From positions 248,001 through 312,000 of IMG/VR virus record IMGVR_UViG_3300037882_003354: a stretch of DNA of 64,000 nucleotides, one strand, 5' to 3'. Below, piece by piece: positions 2-62,150 of the stretch. The notes beneath the pieces are model-generated. The model was not told where the DNA came from and made no database searches. It saw only the letters and a list, made by a program, of their open reading frames with translations. Positions within the stretch are counted from its first letter, which is position 1; every line of letters begins with the position of its first letter. A program made the position numbers and the translations under genes.

Positions 2-250
2 CGACACTATATATTTAAAGCAGTTCCGTATAATACATACTACGCAGGCGATTATGAAATAAATGGGAACGCAAATTATGCTCCCGTGTCCATGGTTACT
101 AGAAGTGATAGGGACGAATCATACATCATTAGTGCTAATAGAAGATCCCAGGATGCAGGTAATGCCAATGTTGGTCTAACTTCCCCAGCGGGCAGTGGAA
201 GTGAAACCCGCCCAAGAAACCTTGCACTATATGCAATTATCAAATATTAA
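2..250 (+). CDS. C-terminal part of a tail fibre / tail-collar protein (runs off the left edge)
   Basis: Open frame 2..250 ending ETRPRNLALYAIIKY*, the typical C-terminus of tail-collar/fibre proteins. Confidence 0.75.
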   Translation, partial: RHYIFKAVPYNTYYAGDYEINGNANYAPVSMVTRSDRDESYIISANRRSQDAGNANVGLTSPAGSGSETRPRNLALYAIIKY

Positions 251-2836: not shown

Positions 2837-3420
2837 CAGGCTTGGACGGCAGCCCGCTTGGTTTTAGTCTTGGGCGGGTCCAGCGCATCTGCCTGCTTGC
2901 GAAGATCTTGCGCTTCCTGGAATAACCGATCTGCCTTGGCACGCATGTCCACCGCAGTGGTGGGCTGATCCTCCACCACAGGTTCAATGACGATTGCTTC
3001 AGTAATTGGCTGTTTGGCAGACTTGGTGGCAGGCTTACCATTTTCAGTAATGGCCAGATCCTCCAGGTTGACACCACGTTGTTCAGCAATGATCTTGTTC
3101 AGTTCATCTAATTGAACAGTGGCCTGCGTATTGGGAGTCATCAACACTAAATTAGTGGGAACCTTTTTCAAGTGTCCACGAGTGTGCAAATATTCCAACA
3201 TGTTGCTGCCGTCTGGGAATCGCCGAACGGATAGAATGTCTGCCAACTCGTTGGCGGATTGTGCACTCTCATCTTGAATCAGTGACATGAGTGAATCATG
3301 ATATGAATCAACAAGCCCTTGAGTTCCCACAACAAGTGCGCTCAGGTGGTCTCCGGGAAGTGTACGGTAGACCACCACAACCTTGGCGCTGTTGTTTTTC
3401 ATTTTTCCCACATGTTTCAT
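2836..3420 (-). CDS. Conserved hypothetical phage protein
   Basis: 194-aa ORF abutting neighbours in the operon; no family recognised. Confidence 0.75.
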   Translation of the reverse strand: MKHVGKMKNNSAKVVVVYRTLPGDHLSALVVGTQGLVDSYHDSLMSLIQDESAQSANELADILSVRRFPDGSNMLEYLHTRGHLKKVPTNLVLMTPNTQATVQLDELNKIIAEQRGVNLEDLAITENGKPATKSAKQPITEAIVIEPVVEDQPTTAVDMRAKADRLFQEAQDLRKQADALDPPKTKTKRAAVQA

Positions 3421-10075: not shown

Positions 10076-10923
10076 GTGCCCCATGCGTTGCGGAACAAAG
10101 GCACCTGCAATCGATCACTATATCGCAGTCCATGCTGCATGGCCAATTCGGCCACACGACGATTGTTCAGTGTGTATACACTTTCCACACCACCCACGGG
10201 CATGAGATAGATGGGTCCACGAAATCCAGCAGCACGATATTCAGCCGAGGCTTCCAAGGCATCAGCTACATCTGTTTCAGTGGCCACCACAAACTTCAGG
10301 TATGCATAACCCACCTGTTCATATTCGCAGACAACTTCCGGACGAATGGCATCCTCCCAGTTTTCACCACTGCATGGCAGTTTGGCACTGACTGAGAATG
10401 TGACCTCACCACCAGCGCCGTGTGGAAACTGCGCCTGATTCCAGGCTTGCAAGTACTCTTTAAATTCCTTGGTCAATCGCTGAGTGCCGTTGGTCTCAAA
10501 AGTAATCTCTTTTAGATTCTTCATCTTGGCATGCGCCAGCAAGTCAGGATAGGCCCGTTGCCAACCCAGCAAGGGCTCACCGCCTGTGATCACCAGGTGC
10601 TCATCACGCCATTCGCCGAACGGTAAAATTTCCATGATGCGGTCGGCGATGGCATCAGTGGTCAGCATGGGACTCAGATGTTTGAACTCCGGCATCCAGG
10701 AGGCGAAGGAGTCGCATCCTGACTTGACCAAGGGCAGGTCGTTGTATGTTTTATAATCTGCGATCTTGATCGCATGACGCTCTTGACTGGCTTCACCTGG
10801 CAGCATGCCAAATCCGTCACAGGTAAAATTACAACCAAATGTTCTCAAGAACACGGAGGGAACGCCCATATAACGTCCCTCTCCCTGGATTGAATAGAAT
10901 AATTCGCTTACTTTAATCTTCAT
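10072..10923 (-). CDS. queE: 7-carboxy-7-deazaguanine synthase (radical SAM QueE)
   Basis: KVSELFYSIQGEG, VFLRTFGCNFTC...GCDS, VITGGEPLL, ETNGT, VSAKL, YSDRLQV. Confidence 0.9.
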   Translation of the reverse strand: MKIKVSELFYSIQGEGRYMGVPSVFLRTFGCNFTCDGFGMLPGEASQERHAIKIADYKTYNDLPLVKSGCDSFASWMPEFKHLSPMLTTDAIADRIMEILPFGEWRDEHLVITGGEPLLGWQRAYPDLLAHAKMKNLKEITFETNGTQRLTKEFKEYLQAWNQAQFPHGAGGEVTFSVSAKLPCSGENWEDAIRPEVVCEYEQVGYAYLKFVVATETDVADALEASAEYRAAGFRGPIYLMPVGGVESVYTLNNRRVAELAMQHGLRYSDRLQVPLFRNAWGT

Positions 10924-44189: not shown

Positions 44190-47100
44190 TCAGGAGAACT
44201 TTTTCTTAAACTCTTCAAATTCTTTGCTGAGTTCCTTGATGGCCTCCACCAACAAAGGCACCACCTTCTCGTACTGAATGGTCCGGTAGTTCTCACCTGA
44301 CTTGCTGTCACCGTTTTCATCACTATCAAACGGAGCCAACTTGACTGCCTCCGGCAATACAGCTTCCAATTCGTCGGCAAATAATCCAACTATGGATTCA
44401 TCAGTGGAGAACCCCAGCTGTTCAGCCAATTGATTGGGAGTGTACCGGATGCCAGTCAGGGCCCTGACCTTGGTCACAGCATCAGTAATCACACAAACAT
44501 TGGTTTTCAATCTACGATCTGAAAAGAATGCTGTGATGTCACCCGTAGTTGTCAAAGCACCACTAAATTCATGACATTTTGCAACATACGGAATAGTACC
44601 TTCATCGATTGTGGCTGCGTTAGTTCCGACAAATCCAATGTAGCCCTGTCTTACTCCACCGCTGTGCGGGAAAAATTCAACATATCCAGACTTTGCACTA
44701 GTGCCAGTGCGTAGAGTTAAGAATCCGTTAGTTGTGCCAACCTGCGTGGTCAGCAATGTGGCATTTAGTGTGCCAGCAGTGCCAGACGCAGCAGCACCAA
44801 TTCCCACGCTGGTAAATTGCAGGCTGCTGGTGCTGTTGATGCACAATATGCCAGTGCTGTCCACCCGGATGCGCTCTGCAGTACCAGCGCCAATCAACAC
44901 AGTGCTTGACAATCCATTCGAACCAATTAATGCACCAATGACAGTGTTATTGATACCAGTGGTTATTGCACAACCAGCACAGTATCCAATGCCAATATTG
45001 CGGGATCCGATGGTATTACTCACGAGCGCATTCCATCCAACGGCAGTGTTGTCAACCCCACTGGTGTTGGCGTTCAAGGCACAGGCACCTATTGCTGTGT
45101 TTGTAATACCAGTGATGTTGCACTGGAGTGCATAACTACCCACTGCGGTGTTTAAGCCACCATTTGTGTTTCTAAAGAGCGTATCGTTGCCAACGGCTGT
45201 GTTGCATCCGCCACCGGTATTCTGCACAAGCGCACCAACTCCCAGGCCTGTATTGTAGCAGCCGACAATGTTGCATTTGAGTGTACCATACCCAATGGCC
45301 ACGTTATTAACACCGCCAGAGTTGCAGTAGAGTGCACCGACACCTTGTGCGGTGTTTCCACAGCCGTTAATGTTGAAGTATAGTGCACAAGCGCCAATAG
45401 CTGTATTGTTGTTGCCATATCCAGAGGGGCCAGGGCTGTTGTTGGAGAAAAGCGCATTATGACCCACGGCAGTGTTGTAGCTGTTTTCTATGGCGTTTGA
45501 TAGCGCACCAGTGCCCACAGCCAAGTTGCCCCAGCCGGTGGTGTTGGCAGCCATGGCAAGGGCACCTATGGCCACATTGCCGTCGGTAGTGTTTTGCCTA
45601 AGCGCAAAACAACCTATTGCGATATTACTGCAACCGATAATATTGTTAGAAAGTGCATTATATCCCACTGCAAAGTTGTTGTTGCCAATAGTATTTTTAC
45701 CCAGTGAACTGGTGCCCTGTGCAAAGTTATTGCAACCAGTGGTGTTGTTGACCAGTGCATGGCATCCAGCTGCAAAATTATAGCAACCAGTCTGTGTCTT
45801 GTTACCGGCACAGCAACCTATGCCCACGTTGCCCAGTCCAGTGGTGTAGCCGAACACTGATCCCAGGCTGGTGGGAGTGGCCAGGGTGCTGGCGGCACTA
45901 CTACCCACATATCCTGCCGCTGACGAACCAGTGTAACCTGTACTTCCGATGTATCCAGGATCACCCCTGGAGCCCACCCATCCCACCGATCCAGTGTATC
46001 CCTGACTGCCCACATAGCCACTACTGCCGGTGTAACCAATGCTGCCAGTGTATCCACGACTGCCAGTATATCCATTACTGCCGTTATAACCAACGTCACC
46101 CCGACTGCCGGTGTAACCCAGAACTCCCGATCCCGCATATCCAGTGGACGCTGATCCGGTGTAGCCAATGAGGCCACGACTGCCTGTGTATCCCAGCACA
46201 CCCGATCCCACATATCCCGTGGCAGCTGAGCCGGTGTAACCCACGCTGCCCTGGTATCCCACTCCTATGGAACCAGTGTATCCCAGTACAGCCGATCCCA
46301 CATATCCAGCACCGGCGGAGCCAGTATAACCCAGGCTACCACTATATCCAAATCCTGTGGAACCAGTGTAACCCAGACTGCCGGTGTATCCCTGTGTTCC
46401 TGAACCAGTGTAGCCAATGCCCTGCGAACCAGCATAACCCGCGCTGCCGCTGTATCCTATGCCCGACGAACCAGCATAACCGCGACTGCCAATGTAGCCA
46501 ATGCTGCCAGTGTAACCAATTGATCCAGTGAAGCCAACACCCTGTGAACCAGCGTATCCTGAACTGCCAGTGTAACCTTGAGCGCCCGATCCTGTGTAGC
46601 CAACACCTTGTGAACCAGTGTAACCCTGGCTACCAGTGTAACCTTGGGCGCCCGATCCTGTGTACCCAAGCAGACCGCGACTGCCCACGTAGCCCACGCT
46701 GCCGGTGTAGCCCAGCACACTGGAACCGGAATATCCAATGCCCTGTGAACCGGTATATCCTGAACTGCCAGTGTAACCCTGTGGGCCCTGTACATTGCTT
46801 GCCGAGCCGGTGTATCCTATGCTGCCCACGTACCCTCGGCTGCCCGAGTAACCAGATGGTCCCACAATTTTACCAACATCAGAAAATCCTGACACATTAC
46901 CCGGAGCAGTGGCATTGGAGTAGACCCATAAATTACCCGAATTCGCAGCAATATATCCATCGCCAATATTGATGGGACCAACGATGCTGGCGAACTGGCT
47001 GGTGGTGGCTTCAGTCACACTGCCCTTGATGTTGAGGCCAGAGCCCAGGGAACCAGTGTACCCAAAATCACCTCTAGAGCCACGACTGCCCACATATCCC

Positions 47101-50487: not shown

Positions 50488-50564
50488 ACGGCCATACCGG
50501 AACGCTCTTCTAAAGCGTAGTACCGTAATTGGAGTCAATGTGGGTTCGAGTCCCGCTGGCCGTA
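50488..50564 (+). tRNA. tRNA-Arg(TCT)-like element lacking a D arm
   Basis: Acceptor ACGGCCA/TGGCCGT; anticodon arm ACGCT-CTTCTAA-AGCGT; T arm GTGGG-TTCGAGT-CCCGC; only 7 nt where the D arm should be. Confidence 0.65.
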
Positions 50565-50609
50565 CAAAATACTTTCGAACAGCTGAATCAACACAATAAC
50601 CAACAAATC

Positions 50610-51389
50610 ATGAGTAGAAAACTAACCATCATAACTAGAACATGCGGCAGAGTATTTGCCATTCACGGAAGCCGATACATTGACCGAACCAAGGCCGAAA
50701 TTATCAACACCTGCCTCAGCAGTCTGGTCCACAGCATCAACCGGGTGCAAGGACATGAGATTGAGTTGTATGTGCTGGACGATCACAGTGACGATGCTGT
50801 GACGGCAGACATCAAGACCATATTGTCCAAGTGCAAATTTCCCACAGAGTTCATACCAGTTGTGGACGGCACTGGCGCCAGCCACACCTGTTTCAAGGTG
50901 TACGACCTGGTGGAAAAACACGCCACTGACCTCTGGTTGCACGTGGAGGATGATTATCTGCACGTGCCCGAATCCATTCAGGACATGATTGACACGGTGG
51001 ATCACTTGGAGGTCAATACTGGACGAATGATTGCCATCAATCCACACGATGATCCGCACCGCTACTCCAGCCAAATTTATGAAAGCATCCTGCTGTACGG
51101 CCCCGAGCGGCATTATCGCACGGTCAAACACAGCACATACACCTGCCTGGCCAGTCGTGCCATTTACGACACCTATCGAGATCTCTTCCAGGAATCGGCA
51201 GAGTGGATACTCAGACGTGGTGAAGACGAGCACATCAATCGGGTGTGGAGCAAGCCTGATGTCATGATGTTCAGCCCCATACCCAGTGTGGCCCTGCATT
51301 TGGCAGACGAAATGAGTCGAGATCCTTACCTGGACATTGACCAACTATGGAACAGTGTGCCTGAACTCTGGAGGACGGATCATGAGTAA
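50610..51389 (+). CDS. GT-A (family 2-like) glycosyltransferase
   Basis: YVLDDHS, WLHVEDDY, SVALH; start re-picked to MSRKL. Confidence 0.72.
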   Translation: MSRKLTIITRTCGRVFAIHGSRYIDRTKAEIINTCLSSLVHSINRVQGHEIELYVLDDHSDDAVTADIKTILSKCKFPTEFIPVVDGTGASHTCFKVYDLVEKHATDLWLHVEDDYLHVPESIQDMIDTVDHLEVNTGRMIAINPHDDPHRYSSQIYESILLYGPERHYRTVKHSTYTCLASRAIYDTYRDLFQESAEWILRRGEDEHINRVWSKPDVMMFSPIPSVALHLADEMSRDPYLDIDQLWNSVPELWRTDHE

Positions 51390-52206
51390 TCGAACATTTC
51401 TTCATGCTGGCACTTTTGGCGACACCATTTATGCCCTGAATGTCATCAAGTTACTGGGCGGCGGCGATCTTTACATCGAATTAAATGGCATGGATGCTCT
51501 GGCACGGAAAATGTGGGGCGGTGGTGATGCAGGGGATCACAGAGGCAGATACACTCAACAAGACATTGATTTTATCCTGCCCTTGCTTGAAAAACAAAGT
51601 TACATCAACCAGGTGAAGATCTGGAACGGGGAACACATAGACCATGATCTCAGGGATCACTATAAATTTTGGGCCAAGAGGGAGGGAAAAATAGAAAACT
51701 GGATGGGCAACCAAACAGAAACCTATGCAATCGCCTGCGGCTTGGACATACACCAGCACAGACAGGACCTCTTGATCAATCCCTGGTTGGACAACATTGA
51801 TCCGGTGTCAATTCCAGGTAAACCCATCATTCTCAATCGCACACATCGACACATCAGACGCGACACTTTCAACATGCAGTTGACTAATGATCAATGTGAT
51901 CACTGGATCAAGGAAGACAGTTTGCTGGACATGGCGGTGTTTGTGGGCGCTCCACAGGAGCATGCAGAATTTTGTGAACAATATGCATGTGATATCCAAT
52001 ACCGACCAGTGACTGACATGCTGGAAATGGCGCAGCTGATAAAAGGATCCGAACAGTTTATCGGAAACCAGAGCATGGCATTGAGCCTGGCCATAGCACT
52101 GGGTAAAACTTTTTGGTGTGAAATTCGGGTGGATTACGAAGATATAAAAACACCACACGGATATGGCGACGTCTGGTTCCCCAGGGCCAATGGTCATTAT
52201 TTTTAA
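51382..52206 (+). CDS. GT9-like (heptosyltransferase-like) glycosyltransferase
   Basis: HAGTFGDTIYAL; MLEMAQLIKGSEQFIGNQSMALSLAIALGK. Confidence 0.65.
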   Translation: MSNRTFLHAGTFGDTIYALNVIKLLGGGDLYIELNGMDALARKMWGGGDAGDHRGRYTQQDIDFILPLLEKQSYINQVKIWNGEHIDHDLRDHYKFWAKREGKIENWMGNQTETYAIACGLDIHQHRQDLLINPWLDNIDPVSIPGKPIILNRTHRHIRRDTFNMQLTNDQCDHWIKEDSLLDMAVFVGAPQEHAEFCEQYACDIQYRPVTDMLEMAQLIKGSEQFIGNQSMALSLAIALGKTFWCEIRVDYEDIKTPHGYGDVWFPRANGHYF

Positions 52207-52229
52207 CAGTGATTGATAAAAGGATTAAC

Positions 52230-53072
52230 ATGAGCAAGAATTTAGTTTTAGGAGCCGCTTTCGGCTATGGCGTGGAAAAAGTCAAACCATTCGTTCTGTC
52301 ACTGCGCAGACACTATGATGGTATCATTGTGTTTGTGGTTGAGCATGTGACTGATGAATTGGCTGAATTTTATCAGGAGCATGACATTTACACCTGTGTG
52401 CCCGAAGGTCCAGTCAATCGCGGATATGCCAATGTTGATAGATTCAGGTATTATCTGGACTGCCTGGAAAACTTTGACGACATTGACAACGTCATGCTGA
52501 CCGACATTCGTGATGTGGTGTTTCAAAGCAATCCATTTGATCACTATCCCAAACACGATATTGAATTATTTGCTGAACCGGAAGTGTTTGGCAAGTGCAA
52601 TCATAATGGTCCTTGGTATTCAGGATTATACGGTGCACAGCAGCTGGACAAGATCAAAGATGAATACGTGCTGTGTGCTGGCACCACCCTGGGCAAGTTT
52701 GACACCATGGTGCAATACATCACAGTTTTGATTGAAGAAATTGCCAAGTTGGAACAGGCAGGCCTGGCACATGGCACCTGCGATCAGGCTGTGCACAATC
52801 ACATTGTTTATACCGGAAGGTTTTCTGATTACCGAATCAATCATAACGGTCAAGGCCTGGTGGCCACCATGCACCATAGCAAGACACTGACATTCGATCG
52901 ACAGGGACGCATGTTAAATCATGACGGCTCGCCCACACCAGTGGTGCATCAATATGATCGGTGTGGTGCCATGAGTGTGGTTTTTCTTAAAAACGCGCTG
53001 GGGCTGACAGGCAAGGGCATTCGAACAGCCGCGGAGTATGCCGCAAATAATTTTTTCGAACATGATTTGTAA
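52230..53072 (+). CDS. Putative GT-A glycosyltransferase
   Basis: LTDIRDVVFQSNPF, LCAGT, DQAVHN, VVHQYDR. Confidence 0.65.
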   Translation: MSKNLVLGAAFGYGVEKVKPFVLSLRRHYDGIIVFVVEHVTDELAEFYQEHDIYTCVPEGPVNRGYANVDRFRYYLDCLENFDDIDNVMLTDIRDVVFQSNPFDHYPKHDIELFAEPEVFGKCNHNGPWYSGLYGAQQLDKIKDEYVLCAGTTLGKFDTMVQYITVLIEEIAKLEQAGLAHGTCDQAVHNHIVYTGRFSDYRINHNGQGLVATMHHSKTLTFDRQGRMLNHDGSPTPVVHQYDRCGAMSVVFLKNALGLTGKGIRTAAEYAANNFFEHDL

Positions 53073-54275: not shown

Positions 54276-54348
54276 TCTCCAGTAGCTCAGCGGTAGTAGC
54301 ATTTGACTGTTAATCAAAGGGTCCGTGGTTCGATCCCACGCTGGAGAG
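54276..54348 (+). tRNA. tRNA-Asn(GTT), CCA not encoded
   Basis: TCTCCAG/CTGGAGA; TTTGA-CTGTTAA-TCAAA; G73. Confidence 0.92.
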
Positions 54349-54366
54349 CATAACACATTAATTCAT

Positions 54367-54442
54367 GGGCTGTGATTGAGCTGGGGTTCTTGGCTGCTTT
54401 GCAAGCAGTTATCGGTGGGTTCGATTCCCACACGGTCCACCA
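54367..54442 (+). tRNA. tRNA-Ala(TGC)
   Basis: G3:U70 and A73; GCTGC-TTTGCAA-GCAGT; CCA encoded; weak D stem. Confidence 0.8.
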
Positions 54443-54452
54443 AAATGATAAA

Positions 54453-54540
54453 GGAAGATTGGCAGAGTGGCCGATTGCGTCAGTCTTGAAAACTGAAGAC
54501 CCCAACGGGTCCGTGAGTTCGAATCTCACATCTTCCTCCA
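54453..54540 (+). tRNA. tRNA-Ser(TGA)
   Basis: TCAGT-CTTGAAA-ACTGA, long variable arm, CCA. Confidence 0.92.
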
Positions 54541-54542
54541 AG

Positions 54543-54571
54543 TTGACATGAGCAGCGACCGGCTGTACAAT
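54543..54571 (+). promoter_or_regulatory. sigma70-type promoter
   Basis: TTGACA-17 nt-TACAAT directly before tRNA-Lys. Confidence 0.8.
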
Positions 54572-54579
54572 CAGATCAT

Positions 54580-54655
54580 GGGACGATAGCTCAGTTGGTA
54601 GAGCAGTAGACTTTTAATTTATTGGCCGTGGGATCGTGCCCCACTCGTCCCACCA
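54580..54655 (+). tRNA. tRNA-Lys(TTT) with variant T loop
   Basis: GTAGA-CTTTTAA-TTTAT; T loop ATCGTGC; CCA. Confidence 0.88.
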
Positions 54656-54660
54656 TATTA

Positions 54661-54761
54661 AAACACATTCAACGGCAACCGGGATACCTAGCAACTGGAC
54701 GCAGGGGCTATCCAAATAGTAGGGCACTACAGCCGAAAGCTAGGACTAGAGTGTGTTTCCA
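54661..54761 (+). ncRNA. Candidate structured RNA of about 100 nt
   Basis: 10-bp closing stem AAACACATTC/GAGTGTGTTT followed by CCA; inner CCTAGC/GCTAGG helix; strand inferred from context. Confidence 0.5.
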
Positions 54762-54764
54762 TAT

Positions 54765-55010
54765 GGTGGATTAATTGTGTTGTCATGGAAAATGGCTGTG
54801 TTCACCAGCCCAGTGTTAAGAGATCAATTGGGGGAGTGCCGGCTTCGATCATGATCATAGATCATGGTTCAACCCAATCTCAACGGAGACGACGAATCCT
54901 GGACCACACAGTCCGGGCAATAAGCGTCCGGGGAAAGAAAAAATATTTCCATCCCACAAACGACAGCAGGGCGATTGCTGTTCATAATATGACAACACAA
55001 TTAATCCACC
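54765..55010 (+). ncRNA. Candidate 246-nt structured RNA
   Basis: Perfect 22-bp terminal inverted repeat plus at least five internal helices; strand inferred from context. Confidence 0.65.
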
Positions 55011-55025
55011 TGGCAAGATACACGT

Positions 55026-55033
55026 TATAAATA
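55026..55033 (+). promoter_or_regulatory. T4-type late promoter TATAAATA upstream of tRNA-Ser
   Basis: Exact match flanked by CACGT/ACGTG. Confidence 0.5.
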
Positions 55034-55053
55034 CACGTGAAGAACAATGAACT

Positions 55054-55141
55054 GGATAGTTGGCCGAGTGGTTAAGGCAACGGTTTGCTAAACCGTCGCT
55101 CCGAAAGGGGCGCATAGGTTCGAATCCTATACTATCCGCCA
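55054..55141 (+). tRNA. tRNA-Ser(GCT)
   Basis: ACGGT-TTGCTAA-ACCGT, long variable arm, G73, CCA. Confidence 0.93.
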
Positions 55142-55151
55142 AATTTATCCT

Positions 55152-55227
55152 GGGTCCTTAACTCAGCCGGTAGAGTGTCTGCCTTAAAGGCAGAATGTCG
55201 TCAGTTCGAACCTGGCAGGACCCACCA
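55152..55227 (+). tRNA. Class I tRNA with anticodon TAA (nominally Leu)
   Basis: TCTGC-CTTAAAG-GCAGA; 5-nt variable loop ATGTC; A73, CCA. Confidence 0.8.
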
Positions 55228-55233
55228 ACACAT

Positions 55234-55315
55234 GCATCAGTGTCAGATTGGGAATGAAGCGGTCTGCAAAACCGCTCCGAAAGGGAAGTAGGTTCGATTC
55301 CTACCTGATGCTCCA
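55234..55315 (+). tRNA. tRNA-Cys(GCA) with long variable arm
   Basis: GCGGT-CTGCAAA-ACCGC; U73; variable region TCCGAAAGGGAA. Confidence 0.88.
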
Positions 55316-55338: not shown

Positions 55339-55367
55339 TTGACGCATAACTAAGATATGTATACACT
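55339..55367 (+). promoter_or_regulatory. sigma70-type promoter
   Basis: TTGACG-17 nt-TACACT. Confidence 0.65.
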
Positions 55368-55373
55368 TTATTC

Positions 55374-55484
55374 ACGGTTGTGAGTGGAATTGGCAGACCT
55401 CCAAAAGAATCGTTGTATGATTTGAGGGATGGGGCAGAGTTATAAACATCGCCTTTGTAGGTTCGAGACCTACCAACCGTACCA
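55374..55484 (+). ncRNA. 111-nt tRNA-like element with expanded anticodon/variable region
   Basis: ACGGTTG/CAACCGT-A-CCA; Leu-type D loop GGAATTGGCAGAC; T arm GTAGG-TTCGAGA-CCTAC. Confidence 0.7.
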
Positions 55485-55527: not shown

Positions 55528-56349
55528 ATGATCATAGATTGCTTTACATTTTTTAACGAGCTGGATGTGCTGGAGGGTAGATTGGAATATCTGTATGACA
55601 CAGTGGATTATTTTGTCATTGTGGAAGCCGATATAACACACAGTGGTGCTGCCAAGCCCATGCAATATGCAGAAAACATGCGTCGGTACCACAAGTATTC
55701 AAAGAAAATATTGTACATGCCCGTGTCCATTGATCCCAGTCAGTACAATCTTGATTACCGGCCTGCGACATTTGAACCCACTGCACCACAATGGAGTGTG
55801 GAAAATCTGCAAAGGAATCACATAGCCAAGGCCTTGGCGCTGTTTCCTGATGATGCCATGGTGGGCATAAGTGATGCGGATGAAATCCCCAGCAAATCAG
55901 CCATTGAACTGGCCAAGTACATCCTGGGTTCTGAAACAGAGGCCTGCTGTCTGGAGCAAGAGATGTTTTATTATAATTTCCGCCAGCAGGCCACCATTGG
56001 ATGGATACCTGGTGCCCTGGTCACCAACCGATTTGCCAAGCAAGTGTCTCCGCAGGGAGTTAGAAATCAAGCCATGTGGGGTCAGTTAACTCGAATTCCA
56101 CAGGGTGGCTGGCACCTGAGCTATTGGGGATCGCCTGAAGACATTTCGTATAAAATTAAAAATTTTGCACATCAAGAACTAAACAATGCTGAATTCACTA
56201 ACATTGATAACATTCAACAACGTATAGCAACAGGGCGAGACCCGTTCGACCGTGCACCTATGGTGCATGTGGATCCCATGAGTTTGCCCAAATTGCCACA
56301 CGAAGTGGTTGGTATTTTTGGCAAAGATTTTAAAAATTTTACACGCTGA
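55528..56349 (+). CDS. GT17 (MGAT3-like) glycosyltransferase
   Basis: MIIDCFTFFNELDVL, FVIVEA, QRN, ISDADEIP, GGWHLSY. Confidence 0.85.
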   Translation: MIIDCFTFFNELDVLEGRLEYLYDTVDYFVIVEADITHSGAAKPMQYAENMRRYHKYSKKILYMPVSIDPSQYNLDYRPATFEPTAPQWSVENLQRNHIAKALALFPDDAMVGISDADEIPSKSAIELAKYILGSETEACCLEQEMFYYNFRQQATIGWIPGALVTNRFAKQVSPQGVRNQAMWGQLTRIPQGGWHLSYWGSPEDISYKIKNFAHQELNNAEFTNIDNIQQRIATGRDPFDRAPMVHVDPMSLPKLPHEVVGIFGKDFKNFTR

Positions 56350-56368
56350 CACCTGGAGTAATTAACAC

Positions 56369-58021
56369 ATGATCATAGATTGCTTTACATTTTTTAACGA
56401 ACTTGATCTGCTGGAAGGCAGGTTGGAATATCTGTATGATACAGTGGATTATTTTGTCATTGTGGAAGCTGATGTAACACACAGTGGCCAACCTAAACCA
56501 CTCAACTATCTGGAAAATATTGCAAGGTATCACAAATTTTCTGATAAAATTCTGTACTTTCCAGTGCACATTGATGTCAGCGCATACGATTGGAGTGTCA
56601 AACATGCTGCAGATGACCTAACATCACCACACTGGCAAGTGGAAAACCTGCAGCGCAATCACATAGCCACAGCGTTGAAATTATTTGATCCACAAGCATG
56701 GATCATGATTGGAGATCTGGATGAAATACCCAACCGTGATGTGATCCAGTATGCAATATCATGTGTAAATGACACCCAGCCCATGTGTACTTTCAGGCAG
56801 GACATGTTCTATTATAATTTCAATCAAAAGCAAATTGGCTCCTGGCCGGGCACAGTGGTGACCACCAATCAATACGTGATTAATCATGGCCCACAACAGA
56901 TCAGAATGTGGCGATGGGGCTTTGGAGTCACGTGCGGCTGGCACCTGAGCTACTGGGGTTCACCAGAAAAGATTAAACTTAAACTGGAAAATTTTGCACA
57001 TCATGAATATAACACAAGTGAGTTTACTGATGTGGATAAAATAGCAGAACGAATTAAAGCAGGCAAGGATATATTTGATCGTGGTGATCACTGCCGATGT
57101 ATTCCAGTGGATCGATCTTCACTGCCTGCAGATTTATTGAGAGTATTCGGAAAATACGAAATTATAAATGTTGATAACACAGTCCACCAACCTAAGAATT
57201 TAGTGCTGGGAATTGCACTGGGCTACGGTGTGGACGAAATAAAGAATTTTATTTTAAGTTTTAGGGCGTACAACCAACGGGATTGCATCAACCTGATCAT
57301 GGACCAGTCCACACTGGATAAAACCCAGAATTTTTTAAAGTCACAAAATGTGGACATCACGTTGTTTGATCTGCATGATGCAATGGGCACCACACCAGTG
57401 AACAATCTCAGATTTGAACAATATGGAAAGATTATCACTCAGGGAACATATAAAAATATTTTATCAACTGACATTCGGGATGTGATATTCCAGAAAGATC
57501 CCTTTGTAAACCTGCCCGACCATCCCTACCTGTACTTGTTTCAAGAAGACAGTGGTGTCCCCATTGGTGAAGAAGTATACAATTCATTGTGGATAAAAAA
57601 TGCATATGGTGATCAAATACTAGATCAAATAAAAGATCAATTGGTCATCTGCGTGGGCACAGTCATGGCCAGCGCACCAAAGATGTTGGAGTATGTGGAT
57701 TTCGTCACTGCTGAATTAAAAAAATTCAAGGAAAGATCCCCGGATGTCTGGAGAGCCCATGCGTTTGAACAGGCGCCGGGCATGTATTTGGGTTATGCAA
57801 AAGAACAAAAGATTCAGGGCCTGGAAATAAAACCCAGCGGACACATTGTGGGCACCATAGGACTGTCCCTGACACACCACCTGGCCCGTGATCAAATAGA
57901 AGGTCGAGGGGACGGATTCGTCTACGTGAACGGTCTAGTGCCGGAGATAATCCACCAATATGACCGACACAAAGAGCTGGTGGCATTCTTCAATCAGAAA
58001 TACAGCATGCCTGAGTCCTAA
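56369..58021 (+). CDS. GT17 glycosyltransferase fused to a second GT-A-like domain
   Basis: N half paralogous to 55528; C half (STDIRDVIFQKDPF, IIHQYDR) paralogous to 52230. Confidence 0.85.
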   Translation: MIIDCFTFFNELDLLEGRLEYLYDTVDYFVIVEADVTHSGQPKPLNYLENIARYHKFSDKILYFPVHIDVSAYDWSVKHAADDLTSPHWQVENLQRNHIATALKLFDPQAWIMIGDLDEIPNRDVIQYAISCVNDTQPMCTFRQDMFYYNFNQKQIGSWPGTVVTTNQYVINHGPQQIRMWRWGFGVTCGWHLSYWGSPEKIKLKLENFAHHEYNTSEFTDVDKIAERIKAGKDIFDRGDHCRCIPVDRSSLPADLLRVFGKYEIINVDNTVHQPKNLVLGIALGYGVDEIKNFILSFRAYNQRDCINLIMDQSTLDKTQNFLKSQNVDITLFDLHDAMGTTPVNNLRFEQYGKIITQGTYKNILSTDIRDVIFQKDPFVNLPDHPYLYLFQEDSGVPIGEEVYNSLWIKNAYGDQILDQIKDQLVICVGTVMASAPKMLEYVDFVTAELKKFKERSPDVWRAHAFEQAPGMYLGYAKEQKIQGLEIKPSGHIVGTIGLSLTHHLARDQIEGRGDGFVYVNGLVPEIIHQYDRHKELVAFFNQKYSMPES

Positions 58022-59140: not shown

Positions 59141-59223
59141 GCTGGAGTCGCATAGTGGCAATTGCAACGGTTTTGTAAGCCGTCGGGAAACCTCCGTGAG
59201 TTCGAGTCTCACCTTCAGCACCA
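59141..59223 (+). tRNA. tRNA-Thr(TGT) with long variable arm
   Basis: G1-C72, C2-G71; ACGGT-TTTGTAA-GCCGT; variable region CGGGAAACCTCC; CCA. Confidence 0.82.
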
Positions 59224-61411: not shown

Positions 61412-61488
61412 GGGACGGCAGCTTGAGCATGAGGAGCACGGGTCTCATAAACCCGAGGTAATGGGTGCGAATCCCATACGTCCTACCA
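61412..61488 (+). tRNA. tRNA-CAT (Ile2 or elongator Met), divergent D and T loops
   Basis: CGGGT-CTCATAA-ACCCG; T loop TGCGAAT; D loop lacks GG; CCA. Confidence 0.72.
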
Positions 61489-61547: not shown

Positions 61548-62150
61548 ATGCATGTGTTAAGAACTTTACCCAGTCATGTGGCAGTTGCAGTGTCTGGCGG
61601 TGTGGACAGCCTGGTGCTGTTGCACTGGTTGAATCAACGTCGCCAGGTCACGGCAGTACACTACCGTCATGACAGTGATTTTGCACAGGAAGAATATTCA
61701 TTTGTCAGCGACTTCTGTCAAGAACGCGGCATCAACCTAATCACACAAACGCAGACACCCAGCGGCCAACATGGACTGAGTCAGGAAGAATATTGGAGGA
61801 GAGCACGATATGATTTTTTTAAAAACATTACACTACCGGTATGCACTGGTCATACACTGGATGATGCAGTGGAGTGGTATCTATTTTCCTGTCTTAATGG
61901 TCAAGGCCATTACATGGAATACAGTCACGCCAATGTGATCCGACCCTTCCTGGCCACTAGAAAATCTCAATTGATTGAGTATGCTCAGACCCATCAAATC
62001 GTCTGGTTGGAAGACCCCAGCAACCAAGATGTGGAGTTTGCCGCAAGAAACCGAATTCGTCATGACATTCTGCCCACCGCGCTCCTGATCAACCCAGGGC
62101 TACACAACATGGTGAGGAAACGAATTATTGAAAAATTAGGTCGGGTGTAA
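61548..62150 (+). CDS. tilS: tRNA(Ile)-lysidine synthetase, catalytic domain only
   Basis: AVAVSGGVDS, TGHTLDD, IRPFL, EDPSNQD, RNRIRH. Confidence 0.88.
   Translation: MHVLRTLPSHVAVAVSGGVDSLVLLHWLNQRRQVTAVHYRHDSDFAQEEYSFVSDFCQERGINLITQTQTPSGQHGLSQEEYWRRARYDFFKNITLPVCTGHTLDDAVEWYLFSCLNGQGHYMEYSHANVIRPFLATRKSQLIEYAQTHQIVWLEDPSNQDVEFAARNRIRHDILPTALLINPGLHNMVRKRIIEKLGRV

Follow-up and report, generated by a model that had tools for sequence, protein, structure and literature searches.

A probable anticodon-less, leucine-type tRNA mimic of phages

The closest known systems provide the background for the element discussed here. Bacterial and phage tRNA-Leu are class II tRNAs with a 7-bp acceptor, A73-CCA, a GGAAUUGG-type D loop, A15/U48, a long base-paired variable arm and a canonical T arm. 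The tRNA-like domain of tmRNA lacks an anticodon yet is processed and charged like a tRNA; it carries alanine identity (G3.U70), has no D stem, and has a message and pseudoknots in place of the anticodon arm. Similarly, Bacillus cereus tRNA-Other and the staphylococcal cell-wall tRNA-Gly are tRNA-shaped RNAs kept for roles outside normal translation (PMC3399842). These are chromosomal, are not Leu-type and keep a normal-sized cloverleaf with an anticodon loop. Among phages, T4 encodes rnaC and rnaD (species 1 and 2 RNAs), small stable RNAs of unknown function annotated in its tRNA gene cluster, which are the nearest precedent in kind. Furthermore, Fremin et al. 2023 (PMC10690425) predicted 8,495 candidate structured phage RNAs from IMG/VR, the same data source used here, and reported that many look like tRNAs or tRNA-like structures; the paper names only five tRNA-overlapping candidates, none described as Leu-type or anticodon-less.

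The element in question lies in a 64,000-nt stretch of DNA (hereafter the window), bases 248001-312000 of the 322,512-bp IMG/VR virus record IMGVR_UViG_3300037882_003354, which has direct terminal repeats. Seven tRNA genes occupy bases 54276-55315 of the window, and directly after them come a promoter-like site and, 6 nt later, a 111-nt tRNA-like RNA, the parts of which are as follows.

55339-55344 (+): -35 hexamer TTGACG of the element's own sigma-70-type promoter, followed by a 17-nt spacer.
55362-55367 (+): -10 hexamer TACACT, ending 6 nt before nucleotide 1 of the RNA.
55374-55484 (+): the whole 111-nt tRNA-like RNA.
55374-55380 (+): 5' strand of the acceptor stem (positions 1-7), ACGGUUG, pairing with CAACCGU at 55474-55480.
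55381-55399 (+): U8 and the Leu-type D region (positions 8-26), with GG and the conserved A's; the D loop is GGAAUUGGCAGA.
55400-55402 (+): 5' strand of the basal helix of the middle arm (U27 C28 C29).
55403-55425 (+): variable distal part of the middle arm, with an AAAA internal loop, a 5-bp stem and the 7-nt loop GUUGUAU (55412-55418).
55426-55428 (+): 3' strand of the basal helix of the middle arm (G53 G54 G55), pairing with 55400-55402.
55431-55455 (+): long variable arm (GGGGC...GCCUU), with a 5-bp outer helix (55431-55435 with 55451-55455), internal loops and an inner 3-bp hairpin with an AUA triloop (55439-55447).
55456 (+): U at the position of tRNA nucleotide 48.
55457-55473 (+): T arm, with the 5-bp stem GUAGG/CCUAC and the loop UUCGAGA.
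55474-55484 (+): 3' strand of the acceptor (55474-55480), discriminator A73 (55481) and encoded CCA (55482-55484).

A preliminary description, made from the sequence alone, had listed the promoter, the intact acceptor, A-CCA, D-loop and T-arm signatures and two enlarged arms between them, and this observation is confirmed, since everything it listed is in the sequence and the two arms are recovered in the minimum free energy fold. However, taken alone the case is weak. The fold is no better than shuffles (z -1.6), and although a promoter scan finds the same site, at 9 of 12 matches, the match is no better than chance for the region (8 found, 3.8 expected). Standard finders also pass it by: ARAGORN gives nothing at its default thresholds, whether run at defaults, with introns allowed or in tmRNA and mitochondrial modes, and Rfam gives no family at either the gathering threshold or E<=10. 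Similarly, blastn of three family members against 50,697 GenBank phage records returned no homologue (the only hit of the window copy was a 29-nt, chance-level match, E 0.3, to a tRNA-Gln), and an exact 25-nt pattern of this copy found nothing in IMG/VR. What makes the element more than chance is its family.

The first relative was reached through the downstream glycosyltransferase gene, which led to a 97%-identical contig (L082) in which the 111 nt differ at only two positions, one in the 7-nt hairpin loop and one in the T loop, while the flanks differ more. A covariance model (R1) built from these two sequences, which scores the window copy at 145.2 bits, found full-length matches at 49-94 bits in the records behind other loci, and also the three next-closest relatives (L083-L085, 128 bits), where the element sits at a different junction of the same sugar-modification gene block; over these and the later searches homologues score 49-128 bits (E 1e-9 to 1e-29). 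Two exact-pattern scans of IMG/VR, using motifs conserved among these hits, then returned 55 and 119 stretches, almost all of which were confirmed by R1. In all there were 142 hits, comprising 71 distinct family sequences and 2 ordinary tRNA-Leu, and full-length homologues lie in well over 100 IMG/VR phage contigs. The same pattern scanned over one genome for each of 185,579 bacterial and archaeal species gave 7 stretches, of which only one contig is a true member, a 14-kb contig in a Gammaproteobacteria assembly that may itself be phage DNA, and the family is therefore essentially a phage family. I found no description of it in Rfam or in the papers I searched.

Comparison of 69 distinct sequences defines the anatomy. 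Over the acceptor, the outer and inner helices of the variable arm and the T stem, 99.6% of cells are paired, against 93.4 +/- 0.3% in shuffles; 12 of 20 pairs show changes on both sides, against 6.0 +/- 1.0 in shuffles and reached by 0 of 500 shuffles; and versions with the partners slid by 1-3 columns are only 30-48% paired. The alignment was fitted to the model, which favours its structure, but even so the acceptor alone shows six covarying pairs of 7 (99.8% of cells paired) with quite different sequences. In the variable arm 3 of 5 outer and 2 of 3 inner pairs show double changes, with 97.9-99.7% of cells paired, and the T stem is paired in 100% of cells. U8, A10, A15, G20, A22 and A24 (linear numbering) are invariant in 69 of 69 sequences, A16 is present in 67 and G19 in 68, the single U between the variable arm and the T stem (U83) is present in 69 of 69, the T loop is UUCRA in 68-69 of 69, A73 is present in 69 of 69 and CCA is encoded in about 63 of 69. 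On my reading of the alignment, the core positions correspond to U8, A14, A15, G18G19, A21 and U48 in standard tRNA numbering, and the invariant U can form with the invariant A of the D loop the A15-U48 pair typical of E. coli tRNA-Leu. The D stem is a clean 3-bp AGC/GCU in only 5 of 69 sequences; the other 64 (AGUG...ACC) need a bulge or a mismatch, one candidate pair (A10-U27) competes with the basal helix of the middle arm, and in the window copy the stem is 2 pairs plus a mismatch or bulge.

These data also make it very unlikely that the element is a decaying tRNA-Leu pseudogene with insertions. The weak D stem of this copy, the silence of standard tRNA finders and the poor fold score are what such a reading would rest upon, but the helices are kept through compensatory changes among 71 distinct homologues, the core bases are invariant, the promoter is conserved, and among the five closest relatives the 111 nt are 93-98% identical, with changes only in loops and linkers while the flanks diverge. 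The covariation refutes this reading in practice.

The arm that stands where the anticodon arm should be starts with a conserved 3-bp helix, U27.G55, C28-G54 and C29-G53, in which 198 of 207 cells are paired, with C-G to U-A changes in 8 sequences and C-G to G-U in 6. The preliminary description had instead drawn a CCUC/GAGG pairing, a register that is peculiar to this copy (all four pairs form in only 5 of 69 sequences) and is rejected. Beyond the helix nothing is conserved: the arm is 11 to about 31 nt, with one 37-nt outlier that looks like an alignment artefact, and the apical loop has 4 nt in 41 of 69 sequences, 33 of them GNRA tetraloops (GUGA, GCGA, GAAA, GGGA, GAGA and GUAA). The other tips are UUCG, other tetraloops, a CNCAUAG heptaloop in one clade, and GUUGUAU, GUUUUAU (L082), AUGGUAC (L083-L085), UUUCGAG or AAUG in the window's own clade, and one member is just CUCC-GAAA-GGG. 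No triplet is conserved. By contrast, the variable arm is conserved in sequence as well as structure, with a 5-bp helix, two small internal loops and a 3-5-bp hairpin with an NUA triloop (UUA mostly, also AUA, GUA and CUA).

The interpretation offered beforehand, an intron-containing or mimic tRNA whose acceptor may mark a phage-specific class, is thus partly supported: the mimic holds, the intron and the shared acceptor class do not. The point set in advance, whether removal of an intron yields an ordinary tRNA, was examined with ARAGORN, and relaxed intron-mode calls give a different anticodon and intron for almost every homologue (Leu-gag, Arg-gcg, Ala-ggc, Tyr-gta, Pro-ggg, Cys-gca, Gly-gcc, Trp-cca), so that no normal tRNA is rescued. 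The extra sequence, at most about 30 nt per arm, is far too small for a group I intron, no Rfam intron family matches, and some members have only an 11-15 nt arm capped by GAAA or UUCG, which leaves neither room for an anticodon loop nor anything to splice. An insert with a bacterial group I core or an archaeal bulge-helix-bulge motif, whose removal leaves the same ordinary tRNA in all homologues, is not found. A true decoding tRNA, intron-containing or with an extended anticodon stem and reading Thr codons through the UGU of the 7-nt loop, is likewise very improbable. It draws on the 5-bp stem and 7-nt loop of this copy, with U at the second and A at the sixth position, two bases that the closest relatives keep, with UGU, GGU (both Thr anticodons) or UUU in the middle. 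However, the hairpin stands on an extra 3-bp helix and an internal loop, placing the loop roughly five base-pair layers further from the elbow than in any tRNA, homologues replace it with GNRA or UUCG tetraloops or almost delete it, and the phage already has a tRNA-Thr(UGU) at 59141-59223. About 20 members, this one included, do keep a 7-nt loop with U second and A sixth, and a residual anticodon-loop-like role in some clades is therefore not excluded.

The ACGG/CCGU-A acceptor top that the element shares with a second oddity, at 50488-50564, is literal but not a family trait, since family acceptors vary freely (GUGGUCG, GCGACCG, GCAGUCG and others), and the proposal that it marks a common class is not supported. 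The latter element is a tRNA with a UCU anticodon loop whose D arm is reduced to a 2-bp CC/GG stem with no loop; it carries an 18-nt insert in the variable region containing AAUUGG, lies behind its own TTGACT-17-TATAAT promoter, is missed by ARAGORN, and scores 40.6 bits with Rfam's tRNA model but only 22.6 bits with the family model.

The only ordinary tRNAs scored above about 25 bits by R1 that I could identify are tRNA-Leu: T4 tRNA-Leu (33.7 bits), the window's tRNA-Leu(UAG) (30.6 bits), and tRNA-Leu of other contigs (33-41 bits), including those of contigs L094 and L144 (37-41 bits) and three of the genome G002. Furthermore, the shortest member (L102) still passes Rfam's tRNA threshold (29 bits) at 34.5 bits, linking the family to tRNAs, although Rfam's tRNA model misses the window copy and 11 of 12 members tested. 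The family therefore looks like a derivative of a class II, Leu-type tRNA, from which it differs in having no anticodon loop, a middle arm that is unconserved and often GNRA-capped, and a variable arm about twice as long and conserved in sequence. With respect to tmRNA, the 3-70 pair here is G-C in 67 of 69 sequences and A-U in 2, the RNA is only about 90-115 nt, leaving no room for a tag frame at 111 nt, and ARAGORN's tmRNA search finds nothing at the element; it does call a tmRNA gene (flagged with an asterisk) outside the window, at 45244-45616 on the minus strand of contig C1 of the phage genome (G000), with tag peptide AANDDAYLMAA. For T4, with filters off, R1 gives 14.3 bits (E 0.02) on the 3' half of rnaC, which has an acceptor-like stem, a GG-containing loop and a T arm, and nothing on rnaD; rnaC is 139 nt with a 5' extension, ends in ACA, and has a different architecture in a different phage group. 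Nor does the element resemble tRNA-Sec (8+5 or 9+4 acceptor/T helices, a 6-bp D stem and a UCA anticodon), as its helices are 7+5, its D stem is 2-3 bp, there is no UCA loop and Rfam's tRNA-Sec model gives no match here.

The promoter call, weak for one copy, is supported by its conserved position. In 40 of 70 family loci a strict TTGACN-16..18-TANNNT match ends 5-7 nt (33 times exactly 6) before the first base of the RNA, and most of the rest have TTGCAT/TTGATT...TATAAT in the same place; the -35 hexamer is identical in L082 and kept as TTGACG/TTGACA in L083-L085, while the sequence further upstream diverges. Nucleotide 1 is a purine in 69 of 69, and I infer, from sequence alone, a leaderless transcript that starts at or next to this base and needs no 5' trimming. 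Contigs of four lake metatranscriptomes do not lie on 55374-55484, although contigs, unlike small-RNA libraries, are a poor test for a small structured RNA and this result is uninformative. In another set of phages the element has no promoter and lies inside tRNA arrays, typically 3-13 nt before tRNA-Ser(GCU) and about 42 nt after tRNA-Ser(UGA), so there it must be released by the tRNA-processing machinery.

The surroundings also bear on whether the RNA is merely a cis-acting tRNA-like leader, supplying a promoter and a structured 5' end that is cut off by tRNA-processing enzymes to release or stabilise the downstream mRNA, with no trans function. In stand-alone loci it is the first feature after a promoter and points the same way as the genes behind it, no terminator follows it, and in the window's own sub-clade it sits 25-45 nt before the first gene of a sugar-modification block in four different arrangements. 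This block, at whose head the sub-clade places the element (window 50529-53072 and 55528-58021; L083, L085), consists of tandem family-17 glycosyltransferase genes and sugar-modification genes (DegT aminotransferase, epimerases, methyltransferases) and is rearranged between close relatives. However, the downstream genes differ completely between clades (GT17, DegT aminotransferase, a small basic protein or tRNA-Ser), in tRNA arrays there is no mRNA behind the element, and a mere processing signal would not need the conserved variable arm, A73 or Leu-type D loop, making this reading unlikely. The conserved neighbours in the stand-alone clade, a radical SAM enzyme, ThyX, a small basic ORF and a 154-166-aa protein with no family match, look like ordinary synteny, and none is tRNA-related.

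Now considering these findings together, the reading I favour, with a probability of roughly 0.6, is that the element is one member of a conserved phage family of non-decoding, class II (leucine-type) tRNA mimics. What the analysis itself establishes is a promoter placed so that transcription should begin at nucleotide 1, an RNA that keeps the parts of a tRNA shaping the L-form core and the 3' end (acceptor stem, A73, usually CCA, D loop with GG, U48, T arm and a long structured variable arm), and a variable-length structural hairpin without a conserved anticodon in the anticodon position. The remainder is inference: that the RNA folds like a tRNA-Leu body, gets or keeps its CCA end and is stable; that it is recognised by proteins reading the tRNA core and acceptor end but not the anticodon, such as CCA-adding and end-processing enzymes and first of all, probably, the host LeuRS; and that, having no anticodon and a doubled or truncated middle arm, it cannot take part in decoding and would therefore act off the ribosome, either as a leucine-charged donor or as a competitor for a factor that binds class II tRNAs. 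E. coli LeuRS needs A73 and the tertiary core but neither the anticodon nor the variable arm, and minimal substrates lacking the anticodon and variable arms are still charged, so the RNA is, by analogy with E. coli, a good candidate substrate or ligand of the host LeuRS. The phage genome encodes no LeuRS and no Leu/Phe-tRNA protein transferase, and any charging would be by the host enzyme. However, the strongest sequence conservation, in the variable arm with its NUA triloop, is not explained by bacterial LeuRS recognition and points to some other, unidentified partner.

One such partner could be a host anti-phage nuclease, or another factor that recognises the body and long variable arm of class II tRNAs, for which the RNA would be a decoy or sponge that does not disturb translation because it cannot decode. 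The most conserved module apart from the elbow is the variable arm while the anticodon end is free to vary, the family is confined to phages but for the one 14-kb contig, and the Septu and retron-Eco7 defences cleave class II tRNA-Tyr in the variable arm, to which phages answer with extra or resistant tRNA-Tyr (PMC13096335). On the other hand, the body is Leu-like and not Tyr-like, no defence targeting the tRNA-Leu variable arm is known to me, a decoy would not need an invariant A73 or CCA except for stability, and no defence or anti-defence gene is linked to the element, leaving this a doubtful, though not negligible, alternative. More tentatively still than the main reading, large freshwater phages may carry a dedicated, leaderless, anticodon-less tRNA-Leu analogue that the host LeuRS charges, used either as an off-ribosome leucyl donor or as a translation-neutral sponge against immunity that attacks class II tRNAs, with the NUA-tipped arm as its specific handle; if true, this would be a new functional class of viral tRNA mimic.

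Phage tRNA genes are usually explained by codon usage or by replacement of tRNAs destroyed by host defences, whereas here a widespread phage RNA keeps the whole tRNA body under strong selection but appears to have given up decoding, which would separate, in a natural molecule, the non-ribosomal interactions of a tRNA (synthetase, CCA enzyme, processing enzymes, possible immune sensors) from translation. The family thus offers a ready substrate for asking what a tRNA core alone does during infection, a class of genes that standard annotation with ARAGORN and Rfam misses, and a possible new counter-defence or aminoacyl-donor principle.

The tRNA regions of these uncultured large phages also hold several other unconventional RNAs. 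The 390-nt gap between tRNA-Lys and tRNA-Ser(GCU) (window 54660-55050, + strand assumed) folds far better than shuffles (-137.3 against -98.8 +/- 5.9 kcal/mol, z -6.55), with a 23-bp long-range helix; contigs from three lake metatranscriptomes lie on 54681-54995 with 1-4 differences, and with no Rfam match and no blastn match in GenBank phages it is a candidate large structured RNA. At window 55152-55227, a class-I-shaped tRNA with anticodon UAA (called Leu) differs from its counterpart in L082 (approximately positions 103-178) almost only in the anticodon loop (CUUAAAG against CCUACAC), and ARAGORN calls the relative's copy Val(UAC), which looks like an anticodon switch between near-identical phages. 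The tRNA-Cys(GCA) (82 nt, 55234-55315) and tRNA-Thr(UGU) (83 nt, 59141-59223) have long variable arms, a class II shape unusual for these amino acids, and the same is seen in the related contig L002 (2442-2525 and 2872-2953), which shares the tRNA order but has a small ORF at the spot corresponding to the element, its own copy of the RNA lying elsewhere on the contig. Similarly, tRNA-Ile(UAU) genes of 91-92 nt with a long variable arm recur in several related phage contigs (L004, at 10223-10313, L072 and L144). Contig L004 (IMG/VR 3300032286_000505) also carries, at 3047-3163 inside a 27-tRNA array, a 117-nt tRNA-like gene that proved to be of a different kind from the family here, with an intact D arm followed by a 44-nt insert with two small hairpins. 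Finally, a weak tRNA match (29.3 bits) at window 61413-61484 has a CAU loop, its own promoter and a terminator, and is followed at 61548-62150 by a 200-aa ORF with an SGGVDS PP-loop motif, 91% identical to a relative's protein that carries Pfam PF01171 (the TilS-type ATP-binding family), such that this may be a phage tRNA-Ile(CAU) with its own lysidine synthase.
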